Positions 4,126 through 41,800 of a stretch of DNA of 64,000 nucleotides are shown here, one piece after another (the stretch's first letter is position 1; each line of letters opens with the position of its first letter). The translations under genes and the position numbers were made by a program. The notes under the pieces are model-generated. The model saw only the letters and a program-made list of their open reading frames with translations, ran no database searches and had not been told where the DNA came from. The DNA is taken from positions 13,888,001-13,952,000 of the forward strand of contig OU015568.1 in assembly GCA_907165135.1 (NCBI GenBank). The letters are read 5' to 3'. This DNA comes from Oikopleura dioica (taxonomy: Eukaryota; Animalia; Chordata).

Positions 4126-4448
4126 CTTGCCGTCTCGATTCGATTACTTTTTCTAAAAATGAGGGAAATTAATTGATTGAACAATGGGAGTTCTTTTCAA
4201 TGAAAAATCTTGCGCTTGGCTTGAGGACCTTAGCAAAAACCTTACTCAGGATACTGAATACGTTGGAAAATTAACAAGTAATGCCCTGCTACGAGTCGAT
4301 AAAAAAACAAGCGAAATTTTGATAGTGATTTAATTATATTTCCATTTTGTGATAGAACTTTTTTAATGGTAAAGGAGGCAGTGAGTGCTAAATGAGTGAT
4401 GTGACTTTTTTCTAAAACATGGTTCATGTAAGGGCTCGTGCAAAAATT

Positions 4449-18409: not shown

Positions 18410-20525
18410 TCACGGATTCAAGTTTTGAAGCTGTTTTCTTGATAAAAGTCGGAGAAGTCGAAGTTTTTCACATTCGCGTGTAGTGGGCAGACAGGTCTTT
18501 GATTTTTCGATAGATTTGACGAGCGTCTGGTCGGTAGGCCCCGTCCGACGCCCAGCAATCGCGGATTACGTCGAATAGCGGCGACGACCCGCAACGAGGG
18601 CGCAGGTTTTCTTCGTTGACAATCTAAGGAATATGTTTATCATAGTCTATGATTCATAGATCAATTCTATTTTTGGGAATTTCTTCGTGCACTTTGATTT
18701 CAAAAACAAATAACTACCTTGTGCATCAGCTTTTCCTTTTCTGCTAAGCTGCGCAAGTTTATTTTCGTTAGATCTATTTTCGACTGCGAGGAGAATTCGT
18801 GGAATAGAAAGTCATCAACGTTGGAATCAAGCTTGTGATCCGGCACAAGGAATCCGTCGCATTGAGAGAGAATAATCCACGCGATCAGGCCGAAGCTGTA
18901 GATGTCTACCGAGCAGTAGCGATTCACCATGTCCGAATTGGTCGGTACCATGTCGCCTGTATCAAACATCGAGAGCGACAGTACTTCGGGAGCCATGTAT
19001 AGCCATGTTCCATCTGGGCATTCTGAAATTAATTAAGGAAAGAGACTTAGATTAAGCCTACTTTGGTAGAAAACGCGTTCCCTTACGTCATCCAGCTTTT
19101 GAAGTATTTTTCTATTCGGGCATCCAGGTCTGTCATGCGATTCAAGTTTGAGCAATGTAAGCGGCTCAAAAGGTCTACATGGTCCGTTGCGATCATCAGG
19201 CTTGGAGAAACAATCGCACTGATGGGGCAACTCGCGGATAAGCGGTATCGAAGAGTTGAAATCGCAAATGACAGCTTCGAATCTGTCCGAAATTAGAACG
19301 TTGGCGGGCTTCAGATCGCGATGGGCGATTCTCGGCATAGGATTATCGATCCCCTCGCTAGCGCGATGCAGCTCATACAACCCACAAGCGAGAGTTCGCA
19401 TTAACTATTATCGAGGGTCGTTTGAGTTCGGACATTGAACTTTATTATTTGAACATTGCTTGAATATGCAAATTGACTTTTAAATATGATCTTTAAAGAA
19501 TTGTTTGACCCATTCCTGAATGGCCAACTCTTCACTGATGCCGCCTTCTGTATCAAACTTTCGCTTGAGGAAAGAACCGATATCACCCTAGAATGAATAA
19601 GTAAACAGCAGGCAATGAGACGCAATCGGACTAGTTCCAAGTTAGAAGGATCAGCTATTGAACTTGAGCAATTGCTCAATGAGCAATATCTAAATTACCT
19701 GCAGATATGCCGGTAGGAGTAAGACAGAAGTCGGACGGTCATTCGGGTCGCAATGCTTGGAGACATATGCCGTAAGCCGTAGAAGATTGTCGCTTCTTGA
19801 TCCGATCAGGTCAAACATGATTTTTTCGTGTTCTGCCTTCTCTTCTCGATCTATACATTTGACAGCGATGCATTGTTCTTCATAATTAGCCTAGATTTCG
19901 AATATTTATAAAAAAGCAAACAAAATAAAGTGTACTTTGTAGACGAATCCGTATCTTCCTTCGCCCAAGACGACTGGCCGTTTGTTTTTATAGCAATACT
20001 GAATGTCGGAAGTCAATTTTGGGTGGGCGAGCTTGATTTCGTGCGATGCTGGAGGCTTGATTTCATTCGAGTTTCTTGAAAAATAGAATTATGAACAGTA
20101 AAGTATTCAAATTGTACCGTTCGTTGTTGACTAATGACTGAGCTGCGTTTCCGTGGACATACAAGTTGTTCTTCTTGAGCCATTCGGGACACAAATGCAT
20201 CATATGAATCCGGTCATAGTAGAAGAAGAAAATGCTCAGTACGAACATGAAGAAGAAGCCAACGATGATGCCCTAGAATCCTTTATAAACGAAACGTCAA
20301 TTAAATGTTCCCTACCCATAAGGGAAATTTGTCGCAGCCAGTTGTTTGATAGAGCGACGGAATGAACATCATGACTCTGTAAGACTGCGTCCCTAGGTCA
20401 GTTACTTTGCACCACTTTTCTACCGACTCGTGCCAATCGACAATCCTCATCGAGTGCTCGTCTTGGGTCATGTTCTCTCGGTAATGCCAGCGGAATCCAC
20501 AGCAGAAAATATGATTTTTGCCTAA
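18410..20525 (-). CDS. Divergent TGF-beta/activin type II-like receptor Ser/Thr kinase (5' end unresolved)
   Basis: Cys-containing ectodomain; TM GIIVGFFFMFVLSIFFFYY; GEGRYGFVYK; IAVK; IAHRDLKPANVLI; GTWLYMAPEVL; VDIYSFGLIAW; DCWASDGAYRP; no GS box seen. Confidence 0.75.
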
Positions 20526-22816
20526 AGATGATAATAAAACCAGACACGGAAACCATAAGAGTTCTAAATTAACCAATTAATAATCATAATTTTTGATTGT
20601 AAATTAATAAGTTCTTGGTGTCTGGAATCCAGTGACACTTCATCTATGACAATGTCATAATGACATGTATAAACACCAAAGAAAGCTTAGTAAATCATCG
20701 AAACAAGGAAAAATAAAGCAGGGAAAACATTTTTACAAAAACAAAAAACGACATCATTTCATTTGGACAGTTCTTGTTCTGATGAAATGTATAAACAAGT
20801 TCGATCATAAGTACAATTAAATTTCTGATACCAAATACAGTAAGTATCTGGGTCACAGCGTGTTATTGGATTAGTAATCAAGCTAAACACCAATTTACCT
20901 TCATTGTTACTATGCGCTAAAAAGGAATAAATGTTAGGGTCAATCATATCAGGTTGTTAGAACAATGAAGACATTAAAAAATTTCCATCAAGCTTCAAGC
21001 TTTTTGTTTCACCTCGACGGAAATCACTTACTCTGGCAGTTGATCATTGGGAAATCATGGTCCACTTTTTAGGCTGATCATTTTTTTGAGGTAATGCCCT
21101 TTATAAACGGAGTGTCGGAAATATATATTCATAACTAAGTTAAGCCTTTGCCTGTTAAACTTTCAAATGAGACCTGTTCTTCATCATCGCTTATTGTCAT
21201 CATACACATAACCTGTTGCGGATACTCGATGTTTTCATGATGCAGAAGCTCTGTGGTTTCATATTCCAGATCCTCTTGGTCGTAAGAACATCCAAGCTAC
21301 ACCTGGGTTGAGTTTAGACAATTGCAGAATTTCCACAAAAGAAAAGTGGAGCTCGGGGCGCCGGACTTAGTCAACCACTTAGTAAACTATTTGAATAAGC
21401 ATAAACAGATGAGTGAAGGAAATTTGTTTCCACAACAAACAAGTTACTCTCTCAACCCTGGTCCTTGTAGGTCCCTTTGGGGCATTGGTAGACAAGGTCT
21501 GTCACATAGTCTCTACCCGTCGAATTCGTCTCTACTTCATCTCGCACTGTTACCACCATCGCCTGTTGCGCGGTTGAGAGTTCTCATGTGCCTCTCACAA
21601 TCATTTCCGGTCCATGGAAATAATTGGATCGCCTCCCTTATCTTGCCAACAGTTTTCAATACTCAACTCAGTCCAAATAAAGTAAAGCTTTGATGCACAT
21701 TAATTTTTATCTTTCTTCCAACATTCGTTAATTCAGAAGTGCGAAGAAATGCGTATCCAACTCATTCAGCAGACTTCTTATTAAATTTATAAAGAAAATA
21801 CTCATTAGCGACATGGAATATTCAAAGATTAACAGATCAATATTCTGAGGCTAAATTATTCAGCTATATTTCAAGTAAAAATGGTTAGTTTTGCAATCGA
21901 TTAGCTTGTAAAACTGAATTTACGCTTCCATATTTACACTCAGTACAAGTCTATTTTTGTTAACGACGAATTTATTGAGCCTGAATCAAATTTGTAAGCT
22001 TATTGAAAGGAAATTACGCTGTTTTTTAACTTAATAATTTTAAAATTATAATTGGTTTATTGAAAACATCCCTATTTTGAAGGAAAATGAACCTTCTTTC
22101 TCGAAATCTTCGATAAATTCTTCCAAATTGCTTCTTTTTTAAAATCTCTCCGTAGAAAAATCTTCGAAAATCTCTATTTGTCACAAAAGTATGAAAAAAT
22201 TAACAGATTTAGTTGTGTTTATGGGATTTTCTGCATGGAGCACCGGGATCGTTTTTCTCCGCGGCCTGTTCTTTTGGGAAACGCAGCTCGGACGGGCCCA
22301 ATCAAAAGGCGTTGAGCGCCAGAGAGCTCAGCCGCGATTGAGCCGAAGGACACATCAGAGATCCGAGTTCTACGGATATTCAGGACTTCTGAAGGACTAC
22401 TGTCCACAGATTCTATCGGATACTGACGTCTTATTTTCAATCAAATAATTAACGGTTGTTGGATGTCAAATATTTTCTAATGAATACAAATTTAAATTGC
22501 AATTAAAAGTTCTATCCAGCAAACAGACTAACTAAACCACATCAATCATGTGAAATCGTCAATGAAACTTCTTTGTACCCGCCAGTTAAACAACTAATTT
22601 GATACCCTTTTAAAAATAATCAATAGATGGATGCTGCATCCAGGATGCACGAAATAAGCACGATCTGGTTAGTTAGCAACAAACATGCGGTTAAATTTAA
22701 CCGCGGTCGAAGTACATGAAAATCCTGCCTTCAAGGGACATCTTAGAAGGAATCCTTCTAAAAATCCACGTGTTCCCAGAAGTCTTCAATTAACAGTTTT
22801 CATCTCAAAATATAAT

Positions 22817-23231
22817 TGTAGTGGATTAATATATGCAAGTATGACTTCTGCAACAAAGTTGATTTCCGCCGCGCGCAATGGCCATAAAGCCATTAGCGCG
22901 CGCATTTCAAAACCACTACCACCCTCTGAATCCGCCACCACCTTCTGTCGTAAAGCGCACTCACCCGATTCCACCGCCACCCTCGGCTCGTGAGGCCCGA
23001 TGAAAACTCGCCACCCGGAACGAAATGCTATAAAAAGAAGCACCCTTTTTACTCTGTGCCAGTCTGTACCAATCTGCGCCAACATCTATACCACAAATTT
23101 CTGAAAAACGAATACTGCTCCTACTGACTGTTCTGTCAGTACAATAAACGCTCCGTAGTTGTTTTCAACTACCCCCACAACAAAACGCCTTAGTCTCCAA
23201 CATTTGTTATTGCATATATAAAAGCACTACA
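22817..23231 (+). repeat. 5' LTR
   Basis: TG...CA ends with a 7-bp terminal inverted repeat; TATAAAA near 23028; AATAAA at 23143-23148; matches 30683-31097 by eye. Confidence 0.97.
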
Positions 23232-23236
23232 AATTT

Positions 23237-23250
23237 TGGTGACTGAAGAA
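23237..23250 (+). promoter_or_regulatory. Primer-binding site (TGGTGAC..., possibly tRNA-Trp)
   Basis: TGG begins 5 nt after the LTR. TGGTGAC is complementary to the usual tRNA-Trp 3' end, but the match is short. Confidence 0.6.
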
Positions 23251-23562
23251 CGGCGAGGAACTTTAAGACTAGAGTCCATCGCTTAAAGTTCGAAGACCCC
23301 CGAAGCCTACTTTACCGACAACGATACGAAAAGAGCTGCTGCCTACGATCTCCGAAAAAAAGAAAACTTCAACAAAGGTTAGTACCCGGTTCAAAGGTCC
23401 CTAGATATTTCTCAAAAGTCCAGAGCGAGTCCCACTGAGCGGAGTGTTATCCTTAAGAGGCACCACCGACAGGCAAGCTTTTAGGACTTATAGGATCGGA
23501 CCTTTAAGAAAAAGGCACCAAATCAACAGCTCTCACCAAATTTTCGCTCATCTCTTTGAAAA

Positions 23563-24906
23563 CATGTCCGAAATGTATTTCAAGCACGTACAAGACCTTA
23601 ACAAAGGGGAACTACTAGTTATTTACGATAACCTCGAGGGAAAAACTTATCCACCGAAAATCCCCATAAGCGATAAAGAATCCATTTGCCACAATATTCT
23701 AGCCTTGGATAGAGATTTTTTCGATAAAAATCGAAAATATGTTTTTGAAAAAAGTACTGATGGACAATTCGTTCGATATTTTCCCCAGTACCAGGAGGAC
23801 TGCCAAAACCAAAAATTCGCGCAAGCTCGTCATAAAATTGACACAGAAAAGATTTTGGCGTCCCGAAATGTAGAAAATCTAGATGCTTTGATCACATCGC
23901 TCAAAATAGAAACTGAATCTGTTTCAGGCTCAGAGCTTTCAAATGATTCGTCAGTTGATTCAGCTGATGAAACGGTCATTCAAGACGGCCAGGAAGCTCT
24001 GAAGCCACGAAAACAAAAGGTGAAAACTGAAAAGCCGGAATCAAAAGATGTGCCGCGTTTCAAGAAAGAATCGAAATCGACACACATTCCAAAGCAACAG
24101 TTTGAACCAAAAATTTCGCGTTCTTCAAATCTAAAAGTAAAACCCCCACGTTATGACGCATCGATCCCGATCCCAGCTTGGCTTAAAATCTTGAAATCTA
24201 TGCACGATGTTCAAATCTTTCTAGCAGCGAAATTATAACCGTTGCACTAACATCGTTGCTCAATGAGTCCGAAGGATCTCATATAATTCAATCTCTGGAG
24301 TCGGAAGACATGCAAGACTGGGGCAGATTTAAAGATCGATTAACAAGTATGCTTGGGAAGGATAAAGAGTTCTTTAAACATCAATTTAAAGATTACCAAA
24401 GAGGTAGTGACAGTTTCGGACTAGCCCTCTCAAAGATCACATCATACTATAAACAGGGCTACGACCTCACTCACCTCAATGAAAATGATCGTTCTATAAT
24501 TATAGAAAGATTTTGCGAAAGCCAGTATCAAAAAATGAAAGAACTTTTGATGCGAGAAAAGTCACAGCTCACTCTTGAGAACATAGCGAAGCGAGCAGCG
24601 GAAATTGAGGCCTCCATTCCAAAAAAGGAGATCAACTTCAGTATCCAAGCTGAAGATGATGAAAAAGCTCGTTTCCGCGAACTCGTTAACAAGCTCTACC
24701 AAAAACTTGACTCTTCCCAAAGCACACACTCCAAATCGGGCAGCAAACGATCAAAAAGGTCGAAAATCGACATTGAAAAACTGAAAGGGCACTGTTTTTC
24801 GTACACAAAGTACAACAGATGTAAATATGCAGAAAACTGCAAATATATTCACTCTGACAAAGTTCCAGCAGATGTTTTGGACTACGTGAAAAACAGGAGT
24901 GACTAG
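23563..24906 (+). CDS. gag: Gag (one -1 frameshift near 24186), C-terminal CCCH finger
   Basis: Position before pol; capsid-like KPPRYD..PAWLK; CFSYTKYNRCKYAENCKYIH. Confidence 0.85.
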
Positions 24907-27900
24907 ACGGCCATAAACATGCCATTTTCAACTTTTGTCCAAACTATAGATCCGCTTCTTCAGACCTAAAATTCATCAACGTCATTGTCGAAAACTTTCA
25001 GTATCCAGCCTTGATCGATAGCGGCTGCACCCGAACTTGCATTAAAAACACCCTCCCTTTTGTTCGTAAAACAAGAAGTTCTGATGTTGAACTCTTGGTC
25101 GCAAATGATGAAATAGTGCGCCCAAGAGTAATGTGCTCACCGGTCAAAATCACGGTCCCTTCTGATAATGGTAAATTTACCCTAGACCCCTTACCTTTGG
25201 TTGTTTCGAACCTATCCTGTCCAATAATTCTAGGACTTGACGTCCTTAAAAACGTCTCATTTTGCGATGGTGAGAACTTTATCACCCTTGAAAAACATCG
25301 GGTAAAAACAATTAACCCATCAATCTTCTCGAAACAATCAACGAAAGTCTCAGCAATTATCGAGGTTGACCTAAACTCTGACCTTGAATCAAAATCGCTT
25401 GAGAACTTTCAATCAGTGCGTGAAGCACAAGCGAAAAGGGCGAATTTCGTACCTGAAATTGGGAATTACGGGGATGCTTCTCGAAATGAAAACTTTCACT
25501 CCAGGGTCTAACCGAAAAATATAAACTTGCGTTTTCTATGTCACCAGATGATCTTGGCAAGTTACATGGATTCAGATTCGCGCTTCCAACGCATGACGAA
25601 TCTCTGTCAAGCCACCAACCTCCGAGACCGATCCCAGTTCACTTGCGTGATCAAGTTGAAACCGAAATCAACAACTGGAAAAATCTTGGAATCATAGAAG
25701 AGACCCAGTCTGATTTTAACATCCCCCTCATTATTCTCAAAAGCCCGATAAAACAATTCGAATTTCGCTTGATGCTCGTGGGTTAAACAAGCTTCTAAAG
25801 CTAGATCGGTTCCCACTTCCCCACATGCTATCAGTAATGACTAGAATAGGTGAAAACTCACAAAAGGAGATGCATGTTACATAAGTAGTCTTGATTACCA
25901 CCGTGGCTACTGGCAAGTACAGTGCGCTTCATCTGACTCGCATAAACTTGCCTTCAGCTTTGGTAACAAGCACTACCAAGCAAACAGAATGCTTTATGGA
26001 ACAGCAACAGCTCCGAGTGCGTTTTCAAGAATTATGTCAAAACTCATGAACCATCCCTCGATCATCATTTATTTGTATGATTTGATTGTTATTGACAATT
26101 CTTTCGAAAATCACCTCAAAACACTCGAATTCATTTTCAAACAGTGCCAAAATCACGGACTTCTACTAAGCGCAAAAAGTGCAATTTATGCATGCGTGAA
26201 ACAGATTTCCTTGGGCACAGAATTTCGAGACAGGGAATCCAACCATCAGATAAGCACATTGCAGCAATACAGAAAATTACTGTACCAACATCTAGAAAAG
26301 AACTTAAACGCTACTTGGGAATGGTCACTTTCAATGCAAAATATGTCAAAGACGCATCCATAATTCTTGCGCCTTTGTATGAGCTCACAAGCCTGAAAAA
26401 GAATTCAACTGGACGAGTAAACACCAGCAGGCTTTCGAAAACATGAATCAAAAGCTCAAAGAAAACCAACACTTGGCCATTTTAAACTCGGCGCGAAGCT
26501 TCTTCTCGTGACCGACAGCTCAGGGCGAAGTGTTGGCGGGACCCTCTACCAATATCAAAATGAAAAACTAGTTGTTATTGGTTATTTTTCAAAAGCTCTC
26601 ACGGGTCCTGATCTGAAAAGAAGCATGCGGGTAAAGGAACTCTTTGCGTTAACTTGGGGAATCAAATATTTCGAGTTTTACCTCCTCAATACAGAGTTCG
26701 ATTGTGTTGTAGACCACAAAAGCCTGCTCTTTCTTTTCAAGGAACAACAACAGTCCAATTTGGATATCAAACTCACCAATATCCACTGCTATCTCCAGCA
26801 GTTTGATTTCACAATCATCCACAAGCCGGAAACAGCCCGATCATGGCAAGTGCGGATTACTTTTCTCGCCTTCCAAGATCAAAAAGCTCCGACTTAGAGG
26901 ACGATTCGGTGAACTTTGAGCTCCTTCCAGAACGCGTCTGTATGTTCCATCTCATCAAAAATGATGAAAATGAGGTTATTTTCTCTTTCGGTTCCGAGAA
27001 AATAACAAAAACAAAAATGAGGGAGTTGCAAAAAGAGTGCAACCTCACCAAAAATAAGCTCATTAAAGTGGAGAAATACAAAAAATCAAGATTCTCGCTC
27101 AAAGACGGAATCTTGTTCTCCAAAAATAAACTTGTTATCCCAGACCAACTTGCAAATGAATTCATACAGTACCTGCACTGTATAACGGGACATGCTGGTG
27201 CGCAGCAATTAAACCAAATGTGCCAAAAATTTTTCATAAGTAATATCCAAATGAAACTTAGAGCCGTAACGAGCTCTTGCCCCACTTGCATTCAATTTAA
27301 ACCGATCAAAAAGCTCAAACCATCAATGATCGAGCGACGCAACTTCGAGTCAGTTCCTTTTGAGAAAACTTTTCTCGACCTTGTCGACTATGGAAGAGTT
27401 GACTCATCAAACAAAAGGTATCTGCTGACTTGTTGCGACTCGCTTACCGGGTTTCTAGACGGTTTACCATTGGGAACAAAAAGTGACAAAACTGTCGCGC
27501 AAGCGATCCTCACTCTTGTTCTCAGACACGGGATCACCGAGGTTGTTGTTACTGACAACGGGCGTGAATTTGGACCGCTTTGCAAGCAAATTTTCGAGCG
27601 ATTCCAAATCCGCCACGTTACAACAACTGCATACCGATCCTGTTCAAATGGGAAAGTTGAAAGAATCCATCGCGAAATTCACATTCAACTCAAACAATTG
27701 AATGCAAATGATCGCAATTGGTCACAAAAATGGGAGCAAGCTAAATACTATCTCAATAACCTACCAAAAGCAACACTAGACGGGCTCTCAAGTAATGAAG
27801 CTCTCTACGGTAGGCCTTTTCATGTTCCTTACAAAATTGGAACATCAAATGATGGTGCCAAAGAACCATTTATCAAAGCCCTCAATGGTTATATTAAACA

Positions 27901-28408
27901 ACTGCACCCTGCGATCCAAGCGTTCCAGGTACAGAGGTACCAAAAACTCCTCCGAAAAGATAAAAATAATTGCCCAGTTCTTGAACTTGGTACCCAAGTG
28001 CTAGTCTGGAAACCAAATCTTTTTGACGGAAAATTAGGTACAAACTGGAGCGGCCCATTTTATGTTCATAAAAGAATCTCAAAAGATTCTTACATTCTAA
28101 AATGTTCACTCACACAACGTGAGTATCGCCGACACATAAGCCTGATCCGACCTCTAAAAATAAGACCGGCGACTCAACAAAATTCGTCTCGATCAATGAC
28201 GAAAACGATCAATCATCCATTCGCGATAAAAACTCAATTGTGTCTCAAAAGAAATCAAGGAAGACACCCAAATAAAAATTTCCCGCTCAACTGCGTCAAA
28301 AAGAATGCAGAAACTAAAGAGGATCCGAAAAATGAAAATAATGATCCTGTTGCGCCCCTCAAAAATGATCCTGCAAATTGGTCAAAAAGATTACGACCCC
28401 GAAAATAA
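24903..28408 (+). CDS. pol: Pol polyprotein (PR-RT-RNase H-IN), broken by several single-base frameshifts
   Basis: ALIDSGC and IILGLDVL protease; LDARGLN, SLDYHRGYWQ, MLYGTATAPSAF, YLYD and FLGH in RT; TDSS, KELFAL, VDHKSL and ADYFSR in RNase H; HHCC, D-D-E (FLDLVD, TDNGREF, SNGKVERIH) and WSGPF in integrase. Confidence 0.93.
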
Positions 28409-28414
28409 GTTCCT

Positions 28415-28438
28415 AAAAGAGGAGGGGAAGGGGAGAGA
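28415..28438 (+). promoter_or_regulatory. Internal (second) polypurine tract
   Basis: 24-nt pure purine run AAAAGAGGAGGGGAAGGGGAGAGA, 6 nt after the integrase stop and followed by TG. Confidence 0.7.
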
Positions 28439-29068
28439 TGCATTGTTGGTTTGCACTCTCATGAGCCCACTGTGAAGAGAGAGCTTGTTCTTGCTCTAAG
28501 TTTACATTTTTGAAAATCTAAATTTAGCGCCATCTCAAAAGCACTAAAACTATTTTCAAAAATAGCGTGGAATGAGATATCTTGCTCTTGATATGTCTAC
28601 GCACCCGTTCCATTCTAGATCCCTGATCGATCTCTAGAATTCGTTTACTAAGGGGAGAAGTTATTACCGCCGGGACAACGATGCACTGAGTTAACCAACA
28701 CCGTACCCTAGGAATGTAAAACGATTATCTTCTTGGACCTTCGATAAGAATTTCGACTGTATGCTGGAAGTCCATCACCACCCGCTATAGCAACGTTCAA
28801 GTTCAAGTGCCATGAGCCCGCATCAGCTCATGAAAAATATCCGTGGTAAGTCAGCTTAGTCAGCAGAAGGAACCTGCTTATCAAACCCTGCCACAGCCCG
28901 CACAGCACAATTTGATGGCTACTGGACGCGTTGACCTCTACAACTGTTGGAGTCTGCTCCCAATGGGCCCAAACGGGTTCAGATTTACCTTCAGAAGCAA
29001 GTTACACGACTACAGTAGAAGCGAAAATTGCCCGCTTCGCATGCAGCTTAGTACTCGAACCCTGAGTG

Positions 29069-29461
29069 TCATCTGGTTCAGCTCGTGTGGAGAAGAACTG
29101 ATGAAAGAGACTCGAATGCTCACAAAAGAAGCAATAAAAACTCAAAAATTATGTACTCGACAGCTTATCATCAAACGAGTCTTCTCGTGTGGAGAAGAAT
29201 TGATGACTGCGATTCAAATGCTCACAGAAGATGCACCAAAATTATCATCAAACGAGTCTTCTCGTGTGGAGAAGAATTGATGACTACGATTCAAATGCTC
29301 ACAGAAGAAGCACCAAAAATTATCATCAAACGAGTCTTCTCGTGTGGAGAAGAATTGATGACTGCGATTCAAATGCTCACAGAAGAAGCATCTAAGCATC
29401 CGATTCTGCTCGTGTGGAGTAGAACTGGTGACAAAACTCAAATGCTCACAGAAGAAGCATC
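29069..29461 (+). repeat. Array of five ~77-78-nt repeats, each with two hairpins
   Basis: Core CTCGTGTGGAG(A/T)AGAA(C/T)TG(A/G)TGA...AATGCTCACA(G/A)AAGA(A/T)GCA occurs five times. Copies 2-4 are near-identical; copies 1 and 5 are diverged. Confidence 0.92.
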
Positions 29462-29547
29462 AAATATACACACAAACCAAATATCAACCGTGGGAAAATA
29501 ATTAGGCGCGGCACAGTTCGCCTTGGGGCGGCCAATAAGCACCGCGC

Positions 29548-30642
29548 ATGGCTTTGAAACGAGACTCCCTTGCCCAGTCTCAAAATACACAAGCCAAACG
29601 CAAGTTCAAGAAATTTAAAATGCCTTCCCAGGGAGCAACTACCAACCTTGACTGCCACTTCTTCCGAATGAATGACAGTGGCAAGGTAATGTTCCAACGG
29701 TATGTACTACCGTCAATCTTTGGAATTCACGTGCCAACAATCTTCCTTGACCCGAAATGGTCTCGACTACTCGATTTAACAGGAAGTATCCGGTATGCAA
29801 AAGAACGAGCCCTTGATCGACTGCAAAATCGGGCATTTCCTGAAGAAGCATTCGAAAGTATTATAGACTTTTGGAAAAACGAGTGCATGAAAGGGGAGTC
29901 CCTTCTTCGCTGGCAGACAAAGACGGCAGCTGTGGTTGAATTACTAAAGTCATTTAGGCCGATCCCGCAGTTTGCGAATGTGGTCATCAACAACTACGAA
30001 GAACACTTTTTAGCACGTCGAAAAGTCTGGCGGGAATTAGCTAACTATCCAAACTTTCAAATTGAACTTAAAGAAGCTAATTCCCTATTGGAGACTTTCC
30101 TGTCAGACTTACTCGCTAAGTTCGCCCTGCCTACCCAGTCCCAGAACCAACAAGATGAAGCCTTCTATAACGACTTAGATGACCAAGCGCAAGCAACGAT
30201 GACAACCGAGCGCAACCAGCCTGAGATGCCAGCTGCCCCACAGAATGATATGACTGAGCACCTGTCCAGACCCTTTGTGCCGATCTCGCCGACAACATCA
30301 GCCGCAACGTCTCTGTCGATGATGGAACATCCAAGAGCCCCGGATCCACAGCAACTGCCACCGACGACGTTCCCTACTAGCTCCAAAAAAGACATGGTCA
30401 CTCAGACTCAGTTGACAACTGATACCTCCCGGACGGCTAAGGCACCAGCCCAACCTCCAACGTCAGTTCCAGCGCTGAGTTATGGCCCGATGAGCTCCGC
30501 CCCGGACGTCCTTGGCAACCAAACACCTGGCGATCCGCCTCTTGACGACCCCTTTCCTTCAGCTCAATCTTCCAGCAACACTGACAGCGGCAACATGGTT
30601 GAAATGCTAGATGACAACTGGCGTGATCTGCTCTTTGGTTAA
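29548..30642 (+). CDS. Retrotransposon accessory ORF3, 364 aa, unknown function (not Env-like)
   Basis: Uninterrupted ATG-started ORF between the repeat array and the PPT; no signal peptide or clear TM segment. Confidence 0.8.
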   Translation: MALKRDSLAQSQNTQAKRKFKKFKMPSQGATTNLDCHFFRMNDSGKVMFQRYVLPSIFGIHVPTIFLDPKWSRLLDLTGSIRYAKERALDRLQNRAFPEEAFESIIDFWKNECMKGESLLRWQTKTAAVVELLKSFRPIPQFANVVINNYEEHFLARRKVWRELANYPNFQIELKEANSLLETFLSDLLAKFALPTQSQNQQDEAFYNDLDDQAQATMTTERNQPEMPAAPQNDMTEHLSRPFVPISPTTSAATSLSMMEHPRAPDPQQLPPTTFPTSSKKDMVTQTQLTTDTSRTAKAPAQPPTSVPALSYGPMSSAPDVLGNQTPGDPPLDDPFPSAQSSSNTDSGNMVEMLDDNWRDLLFG

Positions 30643-30668
30643 AATCAGGTGCAAAAGTCATAAATTCT

Positions 30669-30680
30669 AGGAGGGAGGGA
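30669..30680 (+). promoter_or_regulatory. Terminal polypurine tract
   Basis: AGGAGGGAGGGA, 2 nt before the 3' LTR. Confidence 0.9.
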
Positions 30681-30682
30681 TT

Positions 30683-31097
30683 TGTAGTGGATTAATATAT
30701 GCAAGTATGACTTCTGCAACAAAGTTGATTTCCGCCGCGCGCAATGGCCATAAAGCCATTAGCGCGCGCATTTCAAAACCACTACCACCCTCTGAATCCG
30801 CCACCACCTTCTGTCGTAAAGCGCACTCACCCGATTCCACCGCCACCCTCGGCTCGTGAGGCCCGATGAAAACTCGCCACCCGGAACGAAATGCTATAAA
30901 AAGAAGCACCCTTTTTACTCTGTGCCAGTCTGTACCAATCTGCGCCAACATCTATACCACAAATTTCTGAAAAACGAATACTGCTCCTACTGACTGTTCT
31001 GTCAGTACAATAAACGCTCCGTAGTTGTTTTCAACTACCCCCACAACAAAACGCCTTAGTCTCCAACATTTGTTATTGCATATATAAAAGCACTACA
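30683..31097 (+). repeat. 3' LTR
   Basis: Direct repeat of 22817-23231, followed by the TSD TAAT. Confidence 0.97.
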
Positions 31098-31326
31098 TAA
31101 TTCTAGTTATACACATGTTCCTGACCTTGAATGATCACGTGGCTAATTTATCTATTCTCAAGATGATTTGAAAAGGCTTAGCTCCTTATCAGAGTCATCT
31201 GACGCAAGGCGCTCTGTCCCAAATACAGACAGTACAAAGCAGCAACTCCCCGAGCATCAAAATATACTTTTCGAGTACTTTTTCAACCATTAGAAACTAA
31301 AGAGATTGCGCGTTTAAAGAAGTTCT

Positions 31327-34145
31327 ATGGATAACAGCGGCCTTCCAGAAGACATAGAGCGACTGCTGTCGTGTCCTGTCTGCTTGGATGTTTTTACTCA
31401 GCCAGTTGTGATTCTTCCTTGCCAGCACAACTTGTGCCGAAAGTGTGCGGAAGACTGCTACGACCGTCGAGGACGCGTGGTTGGTCTAAGGTAGACTTTT
31501 TCTCTGGGAAATTGATTTCATCGAGTTCAGCGGTGGAAAGTTTCAATGTCCAACATGCCGTTACGAAGTTATGGTCGATCGGCATGGTGTCTATTCTCTC
31601 CCGCGTAATTTACTTGTTGAAAACTTGATCGAAATGTACGCGGTATGTCGAACTAGAAGTGTTTTGCGATAAAATAAACACAGTTTTTGCTTAGACTCAA
31701 ATCGCCAAGAAACAACAAGCGCCGCCAGAACCGCCAAAGCCAGAGCCTGTGCGCGAGCCGACTCCTCCTCCTGCGAACAGAGTGCCCCTTTGTGAGGACC
31801 ACGAGGATGAACGAATCAACGTCTTTTGTTTGTCCTGTCAGAAACCGACATGTTCAATGTGCAAAGTCTTCGGAAAACATCAGAATTGCGATGTTATTCC
31901 AATCAAAAAGGCCTACGACGACCAAAAGAATGAACTTCGAGAACATATGGCTCGACTTGGCTCTGGAATCGAACAGATTCAGACGGTCCAAGCTGATACA
32001 GATCATTTGCGTCAGAGTGTGGAAGCTGCATCTAAACGAGCCAAGCAAGAAGTCAACCAAGCTTTCCAGCAACTTTGCGCTCTACTTGAGAAGCGGAAAA
32101 CTGCGATGATCGCGAGAATTCAGGTATAATACCAGTATATATTCAGGTATATAAAATATATTTTAATGAGTTTTTTATTATGAAAATGTTAATAGGAAGA
32201 CGTTAACGAGCGAATTGGAATTTTATCCGACATGTCGACGAGCTACAAAAAGCAACGGGACGAAATCCAGAAAGTCATGAATGATGGCTTAAAGTTGACC
32301 GAAGAGCAAGAGGCGACTGTCTTCTTGACAAAGTCTCGAACGATGATCAACAAAGTTGTGAACCAAGCTCGTGCGATGACTGAGATTCGTCCACCACAGT
32401 CAATCGTTCCAGAGCTGAAGCCATATAAAATCGATTTTGCTCGTTATCATCAGGTGCTAATAAAAATAAAACAATTTTAATGAGGATATGAAATTAAAGA
32501 TCTGCAGCCAAATCGACTTCGATAACGGGCAACGACCAGCCCAGCGCCCTGATTCCGCTCGATCTCGACTTCCATCAAATCACTCCAACAGTGACTTGAG
32601 CTGCATCCCTGGTCTTGCCCGACCACCACCGATTCCAGCGCCTACGGACGACGAGCTCTCAAATTTCCGTGCCATGGCCGACGCTTTAAAGCAGGCTGAA
32701 GACGGCTCTGGCGTATGATCCCTCACTCCGTACAGTAACATCCTACTCATCTTTACTAACCCTTTTTCATAACCCATCTCACAATGAACGGAATTTATTA
32801 TTTATTCTTACTAGAATTTAGAAACCAAACAATTCATCATCGAAATCTATTATTCAAAAGAAGATCCAATAGTCAAAAATCCAAGTGCAATTCAAAATAT
32901 CCCCATTGTCGCCCAAACAGAAGCTCAGAAGCTAGCCGAGGAGCAAGAGTCAGCGAAGTCGAATGAAGATGAGTACACTTACGAAGAAGTTGAAGTTGAG
33001 GAACTTGTCACTGACTCTGAAGGTCTTTATTGATTTTCAAAGAATATATTCAACTTGATTAGGTGAAGACAACGAAGAACCACCTAGTACAGCTCCGATA
33101 TCAGAGCATCCAATAACGGAAACAGACGATCAAATACCGGATTATGTTTTGGAATCGAGTCAAGCATCACGAATTTCTCTTCCTCGACCGCAGCAAAATG
33201 AAGATGAACGAGCATCTGTTGACTCTGGTGCAGTACAAGAAGCAATCGAAGCCTCCATTGAGGCCATTAATGAAGCTCGTAAGATAAGATTGCATTGATT
33301 TGAGTGTGATTTTAAATTAAGATCGGGATGGAAATCAAAGTTCCCGGGCTGATATGGCTGATGATGAAAATACTGAGTCAGATAGGTTGATAAACACTTA
33401 TTTTTACAGATCTGAATGAGAAAATTAAGCGCTTCGACAGAATACGAAGAAATAGAAATTGAAGTCACTGACTCAGAATACGAATCCGAATCGAATCCGG
33501 AATCTGAAGCTTCTGACTTTCAAAGCGCCAAGTCCAAGCTCGAAGAATCTCAAACTAATAATCTTGCCAAAGATTCAGAAGAAAATGACTCGGCGAATAA
33601 AGATGCCACCGACTCAACGTCAGATTCGAATTCAAAACCGTCGATTATTTACCACCCTGCTCAAAACGATGCTCGTAGTGGTATGTAAATAATTTCTTAT
33701 TAATTATTCTTAAATAACGTTTGAGAATCTTCTGGTGAATACGAAGAAATTGAGCTTGAAATCGAAGTAACCGATTCTGAAGCCTCTGATTCCGAAGACG
33801 CAGCTCAACTCGAAGACGAGGTTAAGTTTACATTCGCTTTTTCATTATTAAATCATAGAATAGGAATCGAACGATGTGAGTCTCGCTTCAGTTTCGCTCT
33901 GCCACGATACAAGCAAAGACGAAGCCAGCGACGAAGAGTTTCCACAATCAGCGCCAGCTCCAAAAGCCTCCGCCCCAATACCAATTTCAATGTCGAAAGC
34001 AAGCTCTACTTCAAATTTAGCCTCCTCATCTCCTCGTCTCCGCGGCTGGCTTTCCTCCGCTTCTCCCGGGCGATTAGACGGTGACATATACGAAAAGCGA
34101 GTTCACCCTGTCAAAACAAGAAAAAGAACCAACACTGGGCCTTAA
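31327..34145 (+). CDS. MuRF-type TRIM E3 ligase (TRIM54/55/63-like) with long acidic tail
   Basis: [55 protein letters not shown]; B-box [30 protein letters not shown]; coiled coil. The 3' acidic exons are less certain. Confidence 0.9.
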
Positions 34146-34996
34146 CCTTATTGAATCTTCTTTTTGAATAAAATATTTCATGCTGTATTGAACTCAAATA
34201 AAATATAATTTACGATTTGGGTCAGCTAATTAGATCAGTGAACTGCATATAATAAGATGAAAACCGCCTTACAAGCAGTTCAATACCTGTAACAGAAAAT
34301 GAACATTTCATTCCTACAAATATAAAGAACACGTATTGAGCACAAATATATTATTTACTGCCATGAAACGAGATGACTAAAAAGCATTCTGATAGAATTA
34401 CATCAGTGCAATATAATTTTTCTGATTTACAGGGAACACGAAATAAAAGCTCTTTTTGTCTTCAAACGTGTTTTCTGACTGCAAGATAAAGGCTTTTCAA
34501 GATGTATGGAGAACTTTGAAGCTTCTTGAAAGAGACGGGATTATAAACGAAAAACTGAATTTAAAAGTAAGGAAAAATAAAATGCATCTTATTTCGCTTT
34601 GGACGAATACTTAAGTCTTAATCGTCTCTCTTCTTTGACAGATAGGCAGCTTAATATTCAGTTCATTTATGAAGTCGAAAGCGCCGTGATTTATGTTTTC
34701 CATAATTCGAACCCTAGATGGCGTGATGTCGTCTTATGTGGCCAAGGCTACGCGCGGCTGGTGACGAGCAAGAAACCCAAGATTATAATTTCTCGCGAAT
34801 TCGGAATCTGCCTAATTTATTCGGAGAAGTGAAGGGTGTTCGCCTTGTTGATATCGCCTGTCATTCTTTTCAATATTTTTTGATCGGTCCAGCCACCAAA
34901 GAGAAAGAAGGCGAGAGCCACTATTGAGAAGAAATATTGGAATAAAGAACTGTCGTTTCTCAAAGAAGTGCTCTAATCAGGCTTAGAAATAGAGAG

Positions 34997-37420
34997 ATGG
35001 AACAAGATACGTTTTTTGAAATGAAGGTGGGAGTTATTATTTTGATGCAAATTTTATTAAAAGTTGAATGTAAGAAACAAATTTACTGCAAATTTATCAC
35101 AACTAAGGGGATAAGGTTGCATTATTTTTAATGCGGTCGATCCAGCTTGACTTTGAAGTGACAAAGCAGCATAAAATAAATCCTCCATAGATATTAAAGT
35201 CGTTAATTATTTAAAAGATTTGGACATAATAAGACATAAATTGACTATTGAGAATGGTTTTCCATGGTTTTAGAATACGACCCTTGAAGAAAATGGAGCT
35301 GATATTGTTGTTGGAGACCTATCGTTTATGAATAATGGAGGACAGAATTTTTCGGATATTCTTGTCGGTGGCTTTCCTTTCGAAAATCAGACTGATCTGT
35401 TGGAGAAGTTATATTCAAGTCAAGAAATTGTGAGTTTCGAAGAGTTTGTTTACTCCAAGCTTAATGATATTAAATGGCAGCATATAAAATTAACCCCTAG
35501 CGACAACTGAATTTGTCTGTTACCCTTTATTCAATCGTCTACTCTGTCATCTTTGTTTTTGGAATAATACTAAATGGTCTCGCTGTCTACCGTCTTATAA
35601 GCGCAAAACAGTTTTCAATGCTCAGCCAGGTAAGAGCATAATTAGTCTTAGACTTTTTGCGACTAAGAGAGTCTCATTCCTAATTTACAGTTTATTCCGC
35701 TCAACTTGGCCATTGGGGACGGAATTATGCTACTGTTTCTTCCATTCGAGATAAGCCGGATAAGAATGGAAAACGTATGGCTTTTCGGGGATTTCTTTTG
35801 TCGGGCGTTTAATATGGTGAGGATTAGTGCCGATTTTGTGTCTTCTTTAATCATGTGTGATTAAATCATTGTTTTTCCATTTGAATCACGGTATTAATTA
35901 AAAAATATAGAAGTTCAAAAATGAAACGATCAACGGATAGTGACTCTTTTAACCTTTTAGATGCCCCATATTATCATGTTTGTTTCGATTTATCTGCTGA
36001 CTTTATTAGCATTTGATTGCGGGTGCGTAAATAAGTCAGTCCTAATATGAGCTTCATTTCTATAACTTGCGGTAATTAACATGCAAGAGAGTGGTCGACT
36101 TTTGCACCCTGATTTACAGATCGATATGCAACGATGATGAACAACAGTATTACCCGCGTTGTGCGAGGGTGGAAGCAGGACAAGAAATTCTGCCTCACGG
36201 TAACCTTGTTGGCTTGGTGCGCTGGATTCTGCACCTCACTGCCTGTTATTTTCAACAGTACCTATGTGCCAGCACAAAATGGGACTCACGCTGTTTGTGG
36301 GGTTCAATGGGTAGGTTGCTTAACATAAACAAGTTTCGAGTAAAATTTTCAGAGAGCATCAGAAGAAACTTTTAGTGGAGACGAATGCATGATGATTAAT
36401 GGCCATAAAATCTCTCCCAGTGCTGCCTTCTGTCGATGTGGTCTAACTGTAAGATCAAAGGAAGATTTTTCAAGCTCAGTGATTTTTAGGGAACTGAAGA
36501 GATGTTTCGGATATTCACGTTTATCCTCACATTCGTCATTCCCCTCATTTCGATATCGTTCTTTTACATGTCCATCTGGAGAACAGTGTTTATTTCTGAG
36601 CGCAATATTTCAGCCCGCAGCATCAAATCTGCATCCAGCTCCGTCAAGCACACCTATAATCTGGGATTTCATAATATCCTCTATTGCTCGTTAATTTGCT
36701 ACGCAACATAATTGCATGAGAAAATTGCCTAGTTTTAGATTAATCCCAGCGATCAGAAAATCACTAAATGTTTTATTTGTGACGATTTTGCTTGTTTTGG
36801 CTTATCTTATTTGTTGGAGTCCTTATCATTTTACTTATATTTCTATCGTTTTAGGAGACGGCTAAAAACTTATATTTTTTAAATCAAGATGGGAAATCTT
36901 CTAGCCCTTCTTAGGACTCATGAAAAATACATCGCCAAACTTGTGCACAAGACTTCAAAACACTCATCAAATGTATGCGATGCTTCATTTCAATTCGCTC
37001 TATCAAAATTCTAGGCTTCTTTGGTCGAATCGATTAATCAATCCTATTCTTTATACCTTTTTTACGAACGACGTAAGAAAACGTTTACGACAAAACTTTG
37101 CTGGATTCCTCAGGACAGGGTCTTAATATCAGTAATTAATCTGTTTTACAGTTAGGTATGGCGATTCGGCTCAAAATATCTAAATAAGCGCCCTAAAATC
37201 GTACAAATCTGCTTTTCGGTTTCAGCAGAAAATAACCTAAATTTGTGGACCCCAAATTACCCCCTAACTGTGATTTTATTTTGGCTAAAAATATAAAAAG
37301 AGCCTTGCTAAGAAGAGCTATACCGAAGGTAAGCGCATGTCTGTTATTTCTTTGAGTTGTCCAGAATTTTTAGAAATCAAAAAGTTCAATGTCGTTACTG
37401 ACCGACGCGGGCAGTACTCG
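34997..37420 (+). CDS. Rhodopsin-class peptide GPCR (somatostatin/opioid/allatostatin-receptor-like), many exons; ends approximate
   Basis: NLAIGD in TM2; WLFGDFFCR; DRY; FVIPLISISFFY; CWSPY; INPILY. Confidence 0.8.
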
Positions 37421-38819: not shown

Positions 38820-41800
38820 ATGAAGCTTTCAGTAGCTGTCCTTTCTGCTGTTTACGCTAAGAGAGAACCAGAGTAAGTTTATCAAGCTTGTTATAATTAA
38901 TCGATTATATTTCGTACTTTATTTTTTTTCAATATCAAGGACTAAGTCATAAGCATTTTTTTCATGACAAATTTCGAGTAAATACTAATGATAAATATAT
39001 CAAGAAATTATCTTAGTGCCGATCGTCGCCTCGAGAAAATCAGAGGAAAAGCGGCTGACTTCAAATCTTTCGCAGAAAACAATCATTTCGTAAGCGCAAA
39101 GCGTCTCGTCGCTCTCAACGATCGAGTTGATCGACTAATCGCCGACGTCGAATCCATCAATGTCTCTGCTTGCCCCGTTCCCGGAGTAGAAGAGGGCAAA
39201 TTCGCCGATGAAGAGGACTTCAGCGAGCTCTGTGATGCTTCGGGCAAGTTTCCGTCGATGGTCCGCTCCTATGCTCGCACGTTCGGCTGCCAAGATGGTT
39301 TCAAAAGGAAGAACTTCCTAAATAGACTCGTCAATCGAACTCACAAGTTGAAGAAAAAAACGAGAAAAGCTGCTAGATGCGAGGCTCCTGCCCCAGTCAC
39401 AACAGCAACTACCATCGTCACCGGCACTCCACACACCGAAGCTCCAATGCTTGAAATGTGCGACAAAGACCACCACGCTGTTTGCGAGCCACTGACCAAT
39501 TCCGAAATCTACTTCGAGAATCAGTGGACCTGCAGAAACTGCTTCCGAGTACGAGCGACTTACGGCCAAAACTCAGGCTTCAAATTCAACCCGGCAAAAG
39601 GCGATTTCGTAAGCGTTCGATTTACCGAACCGGTCATTTGGCAAACATTCAACCATCCAGTCGAAAAGGTGACCGAAGTTGGTGATGATAACACATGGAA
39701 GATCGATTTTAAACATGACGGAAATTTCATGAGCGGAATGATCTTCGAGGGAAATCTGCAAACCTCAGATGACGATCTTCACGTTGACGGAAACTGGATC
39801 ATTGAGGCGGCTGAGCAATGCAAATGCAAAGAAGGTCCCCCACCACCACCTCCATGCTCACTTTCAGATCCCTGCGAAGGCAAACCTGACTGTGAGACCT
39901 TCATCAACGCCTGCGCCGTTACTCCATCGCGAAATAACCGTATCGCCACGATAGACGGTTCGGCTGGATATGTCGTATCCGCGGAAGTCCAGTGTGGCGA
40001 AAGCTCTGGTGCTTGGGGCGGTATTGTCCATATCAACACAGGCACGAGCAGAGAAGTGTTTGGTGACAGATATTTCACGTTGTGGGCCCGACCTGATGGT
40101 GGAATTAAATTTAATGCTCCTCTGAAGGTATGTTTGTTGCTAATTTTTTCGTAAAATATTTTGCGTAAGAGTAAGATCAGTCCGCTAAGCAAATATTTAA
40201 GGATAACGGTGAGTTCCACGAGGTTGAATACAATCCGTCCTGCACTCCAGGAGAATGGAATACATACACTGTCGCTCAAGAATACGTCGACAACGTGCTC
40301 GAGCTTTCCATCTCCGTCAACGGAGAAGTTCTTGGAACACACGTTGTTCCAGCTGATAATGCTTTCGAAGGAGAACTTTTCGTCGAAGTCGCAGGCGATT
40401 ACCATCCTGCTGCTGATACTTTCAAAGTGCGAAATTTCTACCATCAGAAACTTCAAGAGCCAACTGGCCGCTGCGACGCACCAGTTGATCCATGCGATGG
40501 TGACGATTCCTGCGACGCACTCGTTGATAACTGCCCGATTAGACCCATGTGGTCTAATCTTCTCGGAGAAGTCGATGGTGATGCTGTTTACTCAGCATCC
40601 GTTGATGTTTTCTGCAAGAAAACTTCTGGACACGGCTGGCAGAACGTCGTACATATGACGCAGGGCACCAACCGGGATCAATTCGGTGATCGATATTTGA
40701 CGATTTGGCAACACGCTGATGGACGACTCAAACTCAACGGTCCACTCAAGGGCAACACTGAATTCCACGAAGTTGAATACTATGTCGACTGCGATGACAA
40801 CTCGTGGACAAACATTGCTATTGCTCAGACTCAACTTGAAGGCGGTCTTTTGGAATTGAGCATGTATCAGGACGGCGATCTTCTTGGCTCGCACCGTCTT
40901 CATTCCAGAGATGCATACTCTGGTCCAATCAAGGTGTATGCTTCGAATCCGTTCATGCCTCCCGCCGAATTTTTCAAGATTCGAAATTTCGTCCATCGAT
41001 CTGCTCCATATGAAGATAACTGCGTAGGCTCTGATCCATGCGACGGCATTGCTGATTGCGAAACTTTCGTTGATTCTTGCGCGATCGCTCCGTGGCGAGG
41101 AACCCGACTCGCGGACACCTCGGCCCACGAGCAGTACAAGATCTCCGCTGAAGTCTTCTGCACTGACCGAGTTGCATCTAATTGGGAAAACGTTCTCCAT
41201 GTTCACACTGGAACCAACCGAGAAAACTTCGGCGATCGATACTTCACCATTTGGAAGCAAGGAGGACATGCAGACAAAATTAGAATTGTCGCACCTGCCT
41301 TTGACAATCCGAATTATGAGCTCAATGCTTACGTTGACTGCGCTCCAGGATGGCACACATTCACTGTCCAGCAATCAAAACTCGACCAACACCAAATGAA
41401 TCTCGAGATCATTTTCGATGGAGAAGTTGTCGAATCTCAAGCTGTTCACAAAAATGATCTTTACGACGGTCAAATTTTCGTTGATGTCTCTAACGAATTT
41501 GCTTGGCCAGCTGCATACGATCATCTTGTTAGAAATTTCTACCATCAAGACATTGCTTGTGCAGATCCCTGCTTTGGAAAAGAGAATTGCGAGACGATTG
41601 TTAACGAATGCGAGATCTTCCCGGCCCGAAACCAGCAGCTTACAACAGTTGAAGCGTCTTTGAACTTTAAGACTTCAGCTGATGTTCTTTGCGACCATGA
41701 TGTAATTAGTGGCCAATACACAAATATTCTTCATATTACCGGCGGTGGTAATGTTGGCGAAGTTGGTGATCGAACATTTGGTATCTGGCGACGACCAAAC

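Follow-up and report, generated by a model that had tools for sequence, protein, structure and literature searches.

A short tandem array in the genome of the appendicularian Oikopleura dioica raises the question of what its hairpin-forming units represent: an RNA structure maintained by selection, a reiterated sequence motif, or a by-product of replication. The first-pass annotation of the window, i.e. of the whole stretch of 64,000 nucleotides analysed here, had described five double hairpins whose two loops might pair with each other, and had judged them to be selected RNA rather than a plain minisatellite. Our data place the array within a complete LTR retroelement (Table 1), and a reiterated sequence motif with a secondary hairpin fits its units better than a structure-selected RNA.

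The array and its units

The presence of a five-copy array is confirmed by TRF, repeat search and motif counts. TRF reports a period-78 array at 29165-29464 (4.0 copies, 87% matches), and the repeat search adds a diverged first copy that extends the array start to 29063. From start to start the units are spaced by 102, 77, 78 and 77 nt; the difference between 77 and 78 nt is that of a homopolymer (A4 vs A5). The three central copies are 95-97% identical, the edge copies 73-80%. Both core motifs occur five times each in the 64-kb window, always inside the array, against a chance expectation of at most 0.06. Eight AGAAGA motifs lie on the sense strand of the array, which has a purine fraction of 0.58 vs 0.52 for the whole element and bears GAR motifs as do purine-rich splicing enhancer arrays; it also contains 11 ATGs, with uORFs terminating at 29280 and 29501. 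A derivation of the unit from the TATA region of the element's own LTR (AAATGCT..AGAAGCACC) was nominally significant in comparison with shuffles, and was dropped because real-window tiles score equally well or better elsewhere.

The host element

The array resides in a young Tor-like Ty3/gypsy LTR retroelement. The element is flanked by a TAAT target-site duplication and shows the order gag-PR-RT-RH-IN, followed by a 1.1-kb spacer and a third open reading frame, ORF3. In a word search the closest named relatives of its integrase (46-65% identity) all belong to Oikopleura dioica, the others being marine-metagenome contigs, and on this sequence comparison the element is taken as Tor-like. Its pol is collinear with that of the related element L029 (54-74% identity at the protein level).

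Table 1. Position of the retroelement, its array and associated features in the window
Feature	Position	Strand	Basis or remark
Complete LTR retroelement holding the array	22817-31097	+	LTRs, TSD, PBS, PPT
5' LTR	22817-23231	+	415 bp, TG..CA
PBS TGGTGACTGAAG, tRNA-type	23237-23248	+	after 5' LTR
Candidate 5' splice donor AG/GTTAGT (slash, cut)	23376-23383	+	inferred; leader before gag
Integrase ORF	26843-28408	+	H2C2 and rve domains (Pfam, word search); last pol domain before spacer
pol-ORF3 spacer	28409-29547		array is its last third
Conserved non-coding spacer adjoining array	28617-29058	+	blastn, alignment, RNAalifold; ends 5 nt before array
Spacer long-range helix	28757-28763 with 29040-29046	+
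Spacer hairpin, 6 bp	28811-28832	+	three double compensatory changes
Spacer hairpin	29018-29038	+	one compensatory change (A-U to G-C)
Candidate 3' splice acceptor GCTTCSCATRCAG/CT (slash, cut)	29034-29048	+	inferred; pyrimidine tract and CAG, cut after 29046
Tandem array, five units of ~70-78 nt	29063-29466	+	TRF, repeat search, motif counts, alignment
Array unit u1	29063-29164	+	carries 25-nt insert at 29140-29164
Hairpin 1, u1	29069-29104	+
Block b, u1	29113-29133	+
Array unit u2	29165-29241	+
Hairpin 1, u2	29168-29206	+
Block b, u2	29215-29235	+
Array unit u3	29242-29319	+
Hairpin 1, u3	29245-29283	+	RNAfold; 5'-arm shuffle test
Block b, u3	29292-29312	+	purine-rich, TCAC and AAGAAG; proposed hairpin 2
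Array unit u4	29320-29396	+
Hairpin 1, u4	29323-29361	+
Block b, u4	29370-29390	+
Hairpin 1, u5	29396-29431	+
Array unit u5	29397-29466	+	last unit, ~70 nt
Block b, u5	29439-29459	+
ORF3, 364 aa	29548-30642	+	starts 81 nt after array; ends 40 nt before 3' LTR
Polypurine tract	~30669-30680	+	just before 3' LTR
3' LTR	30683-31097	+	415 bp; 415/415 identical to 5' LTR

Several further observations concern the element and its surroundings. Reading-frame changes near 24166-24193, 25490, 25740-25771, 25854 and 26828 distinguish it from the uninterrupted genes of L027 (described below) and L029; given the identical LTRs, this copy is either a defective one mobilised in trans or is affected by indel errors of the assembly. 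In Gag (ORF 24256-24906, residues 175-199) a C-X8-C-X5-C-X3-H (CCCH) finger replaces the usual retroviral CCHC knuckle, and weak Pfam CCCH matches are found in the window element and in L001 (395-1444). Both U3 regions carry a near-perfect GC-rich inverted repeat, GCGCGCAATGGC .. GCCATTAGCGCGC, detected by eye (22868-22903 and 30734-30769). Outside the element, a B-box/TRIM-like ORF (31749-32129) lies about 650 nt past the 3' LTR, and a 1352-aa ORF at 40295-44353 has a C-terminal LamG-like match (PF06439); both may be host genes or parts of other mobile elements.

The N-terminus of the protein encoded by ORF3 is basic; a helical core (residues 45-192, AlphaFold pLDDT 70-90) and a disordered tail rich in P, S, T and Q follow, and there is no membrane segment (maximum Kyte-Doolittle 19-residue score 1.07). 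Pfam and PDB contain no match to it, a word search with ORF3 alone found none, and the family alignment as query retrieved only P0028. HMMER, run against 1.84 billion representatives, recovered four related proteins (P0027-P0030; 27-38% identity), all metagenomic, which have a conserved N-terminal domain in common. Integrase- and ORF3-guided scans of viral contigs gave no match, and no similarity was detectable to the ORF3 of an O. dioica element. A Bcl-2-like fold is no more than a lead, the best Foldseek matches, including viral ones, being non-significant (E of at least 0.3, TM of at most 0.46). Judged by its amino acid sequence, ORF3 founds a new small protein family.

Folding of the array units

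The bulged stem-loop that had been noted in copies 2-4 (hairpin 1) is real: RNAfold recovers it in 5/5 units, and it outperforms versions with a shuffled 5' arm (p = 0.008-0.011). In unit 3 two stems of 7 bp each, outer and inner, are separated by an asymmetric internal loop, and GTGTG forms the terminal loop. Taken alone, hairpin 1 reaches -14.3 to -14.7 kcal/mol in the five window units (z = -2.8 to -3.8 vs shuffles), and the folding of whole units is unremarkable (z = -1.1 to -2.4 for the five units). Six substitutions and a length change of 3 nt separate copies 1 and 5 from copy 3, yet the energy of hairpin 1 is the same. That these diverged copies keep their stem is unusual when their energy is compared with random substitutions (p = 0.03 and 0.016; the nulls are random variants of a 36-nt non-coding piece) but less so when the substituted positions are fixed and only the bases varied (p = 0.17 and 0.08). 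The double change from T-A to G-U reported for copy 5 was a misreading: over eight units, those of the sister array described below included, the pair is UA in four, GA in three and GU in one, and copy 1 and the L027 units uB and uC have the same G, mismatched there with an A.

The second stem and the loop-loop contact fare less well. Hairpin 2 (TGCT/AGCA) has a 4-bp stem of -2.4 to -3.6 kcal/mol that 3-13% of shuffles match, so that it is no better than chance; in L027, two of three homologous units have it disrupted. The proposed kissing loop, TGTG with CACA, amounts to 4 bp at -2.6 kcal/mol, with a probability of arising by chance of 4% for those two loops and of 23% anywhere in the unit remainder. 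In units 2-4 this match belongs to a longer pairing, UCUUCU-C-GUG/CAC-AGAAGA, which competes with hairpin 1, comes within 1-2 kcal/mol of the MFE and is lost in copies 1 and 5. As the GUGUG loop has 5 nt and is not palindromic, hence without self-complementarity, it is unlike a dimerisation loop; and since the GTGTG and CACA motifs are both invariant, covariation between the loops is impossible. Neither a self-complementary loop nor a covarying loop-loop duplex of about 6 bp, either of which would mark a kissing loop, is found. What stands of the claim about the loops is that GTGTG and CAC are invariant in eight units; their complementarity is at chance level. The suggested Rfam comparison identified no family: at permissive thresholds there is no Rfam 15 match at E of at most 1 in positions 20000-36000 of the window or in L027, L029 and L031. 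A miRNA-type precursor was likewise discarded, since miRNA-type processing needs a stem of about 30 bp or more and hairpin 1, with 10-14 pairs, is too short.

The sister array and the eight-unit comparison

An ENA metagenome contig (L027), one of those that encode the ORF3 relatives, carries a sister element in which 2.6 kb of gag/PR match the window element at 90.7% nucleotide identity. Its ORF3 is immediately preceded by a homologous array of at least three units at 70-nt spacing, a count that is a lower bound, as the contig ends inside the array. The array units of the two elements are 82-93% identical, their spacers between array and ATG barely align, their ORF3 proteins are 36-38% identical, and their U3 regions are 65-79% identical in those parts that align. 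A search with L027 gag retrieved two further contigs, both ending before the array. Scans of public metagenome, genome and viral contigs with array patterns returned single matches or none, the first pattern being too strict for L027-type units; the matches of the first two such scans are unrelated by blastn, and 11 single matches in genome contigs are close to the number expected by chance (about nine by our own estimate).

Conservation between the two elements is thus a mosaic, high in gag/PR and array and low in U3 and ORF3, which indicates either a 3' module that evolves very fast or a recombinational exchange whose breakpoint lay immediately 3' of the array. Because gag of L027 is much less diverged than its ORF3 and U3, a breakpoint at this place could mimic an array-specific conservation.

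The five window units and the three L027 units can be aligned as eight units of two lineages. Their invariant columns are clustered, with 14/16 in one stretch (p = 0.01), and comprise the GTGTG loop, GAG-AGAA..G-TGA of the 3' arm and TCAC..AAGA of block b. The two arms of hairpin 1 differ in this respect: 3/19 columns are invariant in the 5' arm vs 11/15 in loop plus 3' arm (Fisher p = 0.0013). A hairpin is present in every one of the eight units, in differing register and at -9.2 to -14.7 kcal/mol, the values for the L027 units uB (-10.8 kcal/mol) and uC (-9.2 kcal/mol) being weaker than those of the window. RNAalifold on the eight units retains an apical CUC/GAG helix and a weak second stem only (consensus -3.9 kcal/mol), and its covariation term is a penalty, i.e. 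column-wise covariation is absent over eight units of two lineages. A strand bias of hairpin 1 through G-U pairs was not found either: the plus strand is favoured in u1 and u5, the minus strand in uC.

With loop and 3' arm invariant and the 5' arm varying, the constraint appears to act mainly on a sequence motif, and complementarity is a weaker, secondary feature of the unit. The assertion that the array is selected RNA and not a plain minisatellite is thereby upheld in part. The homologous array and the clustered invariance (p = 0.01) speak against a plain minisatellite, and each unit keeps a stem-loop, but selection on pairing does not find support, with a 5' arm that is free to vary (p = 0.0013) and a covariation term that is a penalty in the eight-unit alignment.

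The upstream spacer and repeats at the same position in relatives

Blastn matches the conserved spacer that precedes the array to those of L029 and L030-L040 at 61-67% identity; the ORF3 proteins of these elements are just 27-31% identical to that of the window. No reading frames common to the family occur in the spacer alignment. The consensus fold of the spacer contains 15 compensated pairs (RNAalifold). Column-shuffled alignments of four lineages served as the null: for the plus strand the consensus energy reaches z = -4.8, with 14 compensated pairs where shuffles average 7.8 (p ~0.02); for the minus strand the values are z = -4.1 and 16 pairs, the shuffled mean being 11.7 (p ~0.12).

At the position of the array, L029-L040 possess about four short repeats of 25-27 nt, which fold as CTCG-(7-8 nt, A/T-rich)-CGAG or as TCTCA-loop-TGAGA. 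Monomers at this one position therefore measure 78 nt in the window (five copies), 70 nt in L027 (at least three) and 25-27 nt in L029-L040 (four). In the O. dioica element L003, palindromic tandem repeats of 9/18/36 nt (TTCCGAA/TTCGGAA, 12490-12750) lie about 0.9-1.1 kb downstream of the integrase; their sequence is unrelated to the array, and they are a candidate part of the L003 element. Taken together, the window, L027, L029-L040 and L003 indicate that hairpin-prone tandem repeats recur after pol, fixed in position and variable in sequence.

Relatives of the L031 type have, past the short hairpin repeats and ahead of the ORF3 ATG, a perfect, CRE-like TGACGTCA palindrome and GC-rich inverted repeats (L031 at ~4130-4160, L036 at 1317-1334); at the counterpart in the window (29520-29535), GC-box-like and CCAAT-like motifs are visible by eye. 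The similarity of the region upstream of ORF3 to the LTR U3 is not above background.

Candidate splice signals

Tor elements of O. dioica produce env mRNA by one of two routes, splicing of the LTR transcript (Tor3a) or initiation at an internal promoter, Penv, in the pol-env spacer (Tor4b) (PMC4402516). On either route the array would regulate the expression of ORF3. A putative donor lies in the leader: AGGT[AT]AGT has one match in the 8.3-kb element, at 23376, and exactly one in each of six relatives, always in the leader. The candidate acceptor motif is conserved in L029, L030, L031 and L036. Its AG falls into the long-range helix of the spacer and its pyrimidine tract forms the 3' arm of the hairpin at 29018-29038; the array starts 17 nt downstream. 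L027 has a better-looking acceptor directly before the ORF3 ATG, and with that acceptor the array would fall in an intron. The 81 nt between array and ORF3 ATG in the window contain no ATG.

Possible roles of the array

Our preferred reading, held tentatively and at somewhat less than an even chance, is that the array is an amplified cis-acting module, a set of protein-binding sites in the sense RNA beside the candidate splice acceptor of ORF3. A lineage-specific tandem amplification at the 3' end of the conserved pol-ORF3 spacer would have multiplied two sense-strand blocks, GTGTGGAG-AGAA..G-TGA, displayed on the loop and 3' arm of a stem-loop of moderate stability, and TCAC..AAGAAG. The units would act as reiterated binding sites in the sense transcript, purine-rich and similar to GAR-type enhancers, some of them presented by a hairpin. 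Situated directly 3' of the candidate acceptor, with the array putatively in an exon, they may set the level of the mRNA spliced from leader to ORF3 vs full-length genomic RNA.

Several lines of evidence are consistent with such a module: array units are conserved between the window and L027 while the adjoining spacer aligns poorly; invariance is clustered (p = 0.01), the arms are asymmetric (p = 0.0013) and hairpin 1 occurs in every unit; hairpin repeats take the same position in the distant relatives L029-L040; the spacer shows a structure signal (z = -4.8, 14 compensatory pairs, one hairpin with three double changes); and a unique, conserved donor motif in the leader is accompanied by a conserved acceptor-like motif and by eight AGAAGA in the array. 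The expression of Tor env from a spliced or spacer-started mRNA provides a precedent (PMC4402516). Against this stand the status of the splice sites as motifs alone, the 11 ATGs and uORFs, which would hinder ORF3 translation if the array were in the 5' UTR, the acceptor next to the ATG in L027, which would make the array intronic, and the missing strand asymmetry of hairpin 1. Furthermore, the homologous unit occurs in two lineages only, and a recombination breakpoint could mimic its conservation.

An extended version, which we regard as possible if rather improbable, sees in the whole pol-ORF3 interval a dedicated RNA control region undescribed for Tor or other Ty3/gypsy elements. A folded domain of ~300 nt and an array of hairpin-presented sites would together switch between genomic RNA and ORF3 mRNA, with ORF3 perhaps binding the repeats; the closing helix of the domain would pair with the 3' splice site.

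Alternatively, the repeats could act at the DNA level as enhancer or promoter elements, i.e. as transcription-factor sites upstream of an internal ORF3 promoter like Penv of Tor4b; the hairpin potential of the repeats would then be a simple consequence of sites that are partly palindromic. Retroviral enhancer repeats typically have units of this size (70-78 bp), and the array, 81-485 nt ahead of the ORF3 ATG, is followed by 81 nt that are ATG-free and include GC-box-like and CCAAT-like motifs seen by eye. The conservation of sequence blocks rather than of pairing, without strand bias, is also what such sites would produce, and Tor4b always has a pol-env spacer, inside which capped env transcripts begin (PMC4402516). 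However, the strong and conserved leader donor motif, unique in the element, favours splicing in this clade; the compensatory stem changes upstream would not be needed by a promoter; 5'-arm complementarity is kept by means of different sequences; and similarity to the LTR promoter does not exceed the genomic background. We consider a transcriptional role unlikely, if well within reason.

On a par with this we place, as an unlikely but serious contender, a neutral origin in which pausing of the reverse transcriptase at a hairpin followed by strand transfer generates hypervariable repeats, so that the hairpin is their cause and has no selected function. The homogenised central copies (95-97%) between diverged edge copies agree with this, as do monomers of differing length and sequence at the same position of related elements (78, 70 and 25-27 nt), the unrelated palindromic repeats of L003 downstream of its integrase and the weaker hairpin 1 of L027 uB and uC; a like pattern, with a like proposed origin, is known from Ogre elements (PMC7004042). 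It accounts less readily for invariant columns in two blocks across eight units, for an array whose conservation between the window and L027 exceeds that of the spacer next to it, and for diverged window copies that retain the full hairpin energy.

Highly improbable is an RNA selected for its structure, each unit of which would form two hairpins with a loop-loop contact serving, for example, dimerisation, packaging or catalysis. Hairpin 1 is real, GTGTG and CAC are invariant in eight units, and the extended alternative pairing of units 2-4 lies within 1-2 kcal/mol of the MFE; but hairpin 2 is at chance and broken in L027, the loop match of 4 bp has a chance of 4-23%, the loop does not resemble that of a dimerisation hairpin, copies 1 and 5 have lost the alternative pairing, and there is neither covariation over eight units nor an Rfam match. 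A repeat coding for a 26-residue peptide, suggested by 2/3 sense frames that are open across the array and by a period of 78 nt, or 26 codons, in part of it, is practically ruled out since the 70-nt spacing in L027 is not a multiple of three, the 77-nt spacing in the window likewise breaks the frame, copy 5 is read in two different unit frames, ~29% of 26-codon frames would be open by chance (own estimate, 61/64 sense codons) and no gene is called over the array at the start of L027.

Comparison with known systems

The array is an internal tandem-repeat region of a Ty3/gypsy element, and as such of a known kind: it is non-coding, follows gag-pol within an element bounded by LTRs and a TSD, and its monomers vary among relatives. 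Plant Tat/Ogre elements contain hypervariable short tandem repeats downstream of gag-pol (PMC7004042; Macas et al. 2009 as cited there), for which an origin by RT pausing and strand transfer has been proposed (PMC7004042). As in Tat/Ogre, a head-to-tail array with variable monomers and copy number occupies a fixed position in the non-coding region after pol. In contrast to Tat/Ogre, this is an animal element, its array separates pol from a third ORF instead of occupying a terminal 3' UTR, and the array units combine two invariant blocks with a stem-loop and follow a conserved spacer with a structure signal.

With Tor the element shares a Ty3/gypsy pol whose nearest named relatives are from O. 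dioica, a spacer between pol and the third ORF, and young copies with near-identical LTRs and TSDs of 4-5 bp. Unlike the third ORF of env-bearing Tor elements, ORF3 is not Env-like and has no membrane segment; an Env-like third ORF is not universal in Tor. The donor motif is a canonical GT, whereas GA was reported for Tor3a (PMC4402516). Tandem or hairpin repeats in the Tor spacer are not mentioned in that account (PMC4402516).

Two further comparisons bear on a possible role in RNA. The AGAAGA/GAAGAAG reiterations of the sense strand, which follow closely on a candidate weak 3' splice site for a subgenomic mRNA, recall purine-rich (GAR) exonic splicing enhancers, of which the GAR ESE of HIV-1 exon 5 and the repeat enhancer of Drosophila doublesex are examples; the array units, however, are much longer and include a hairpin, and SR binding and exon location are putative here. 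Simple retroviruses possess direct-repeat or CTE-type RNA elements, namely the RSV DR and the MPMV CTE. Like these, the array repeats a stem-loop-bearing sequence within the 3' portion of a retroelement RNA and could influence the fate of unspliced RNA, but it has no sequence or Rfam similarity to them and consists of five tandem units, in contrast to two dispersed or internally symmetric ones.

Significance

Tor-like elements are retrovirus-like elements that persist in the highly compacted genomes of appendicularians, and the expression of their third gene is unusual in that it depends on splicing in some and on an internal promoter in others. The ORF3 described here indicates a previously unseen family of accessory genes. 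The conserved spacer, the motifs resembling splice sites and the array together constitute a concrete and testable cis-regulatory region for the choice between splicing and promoter use. If, on the other hand, the array is a by-product of replication only, the hypervariable repeat region of plant Ty3/gypsy elements would extend to animals.
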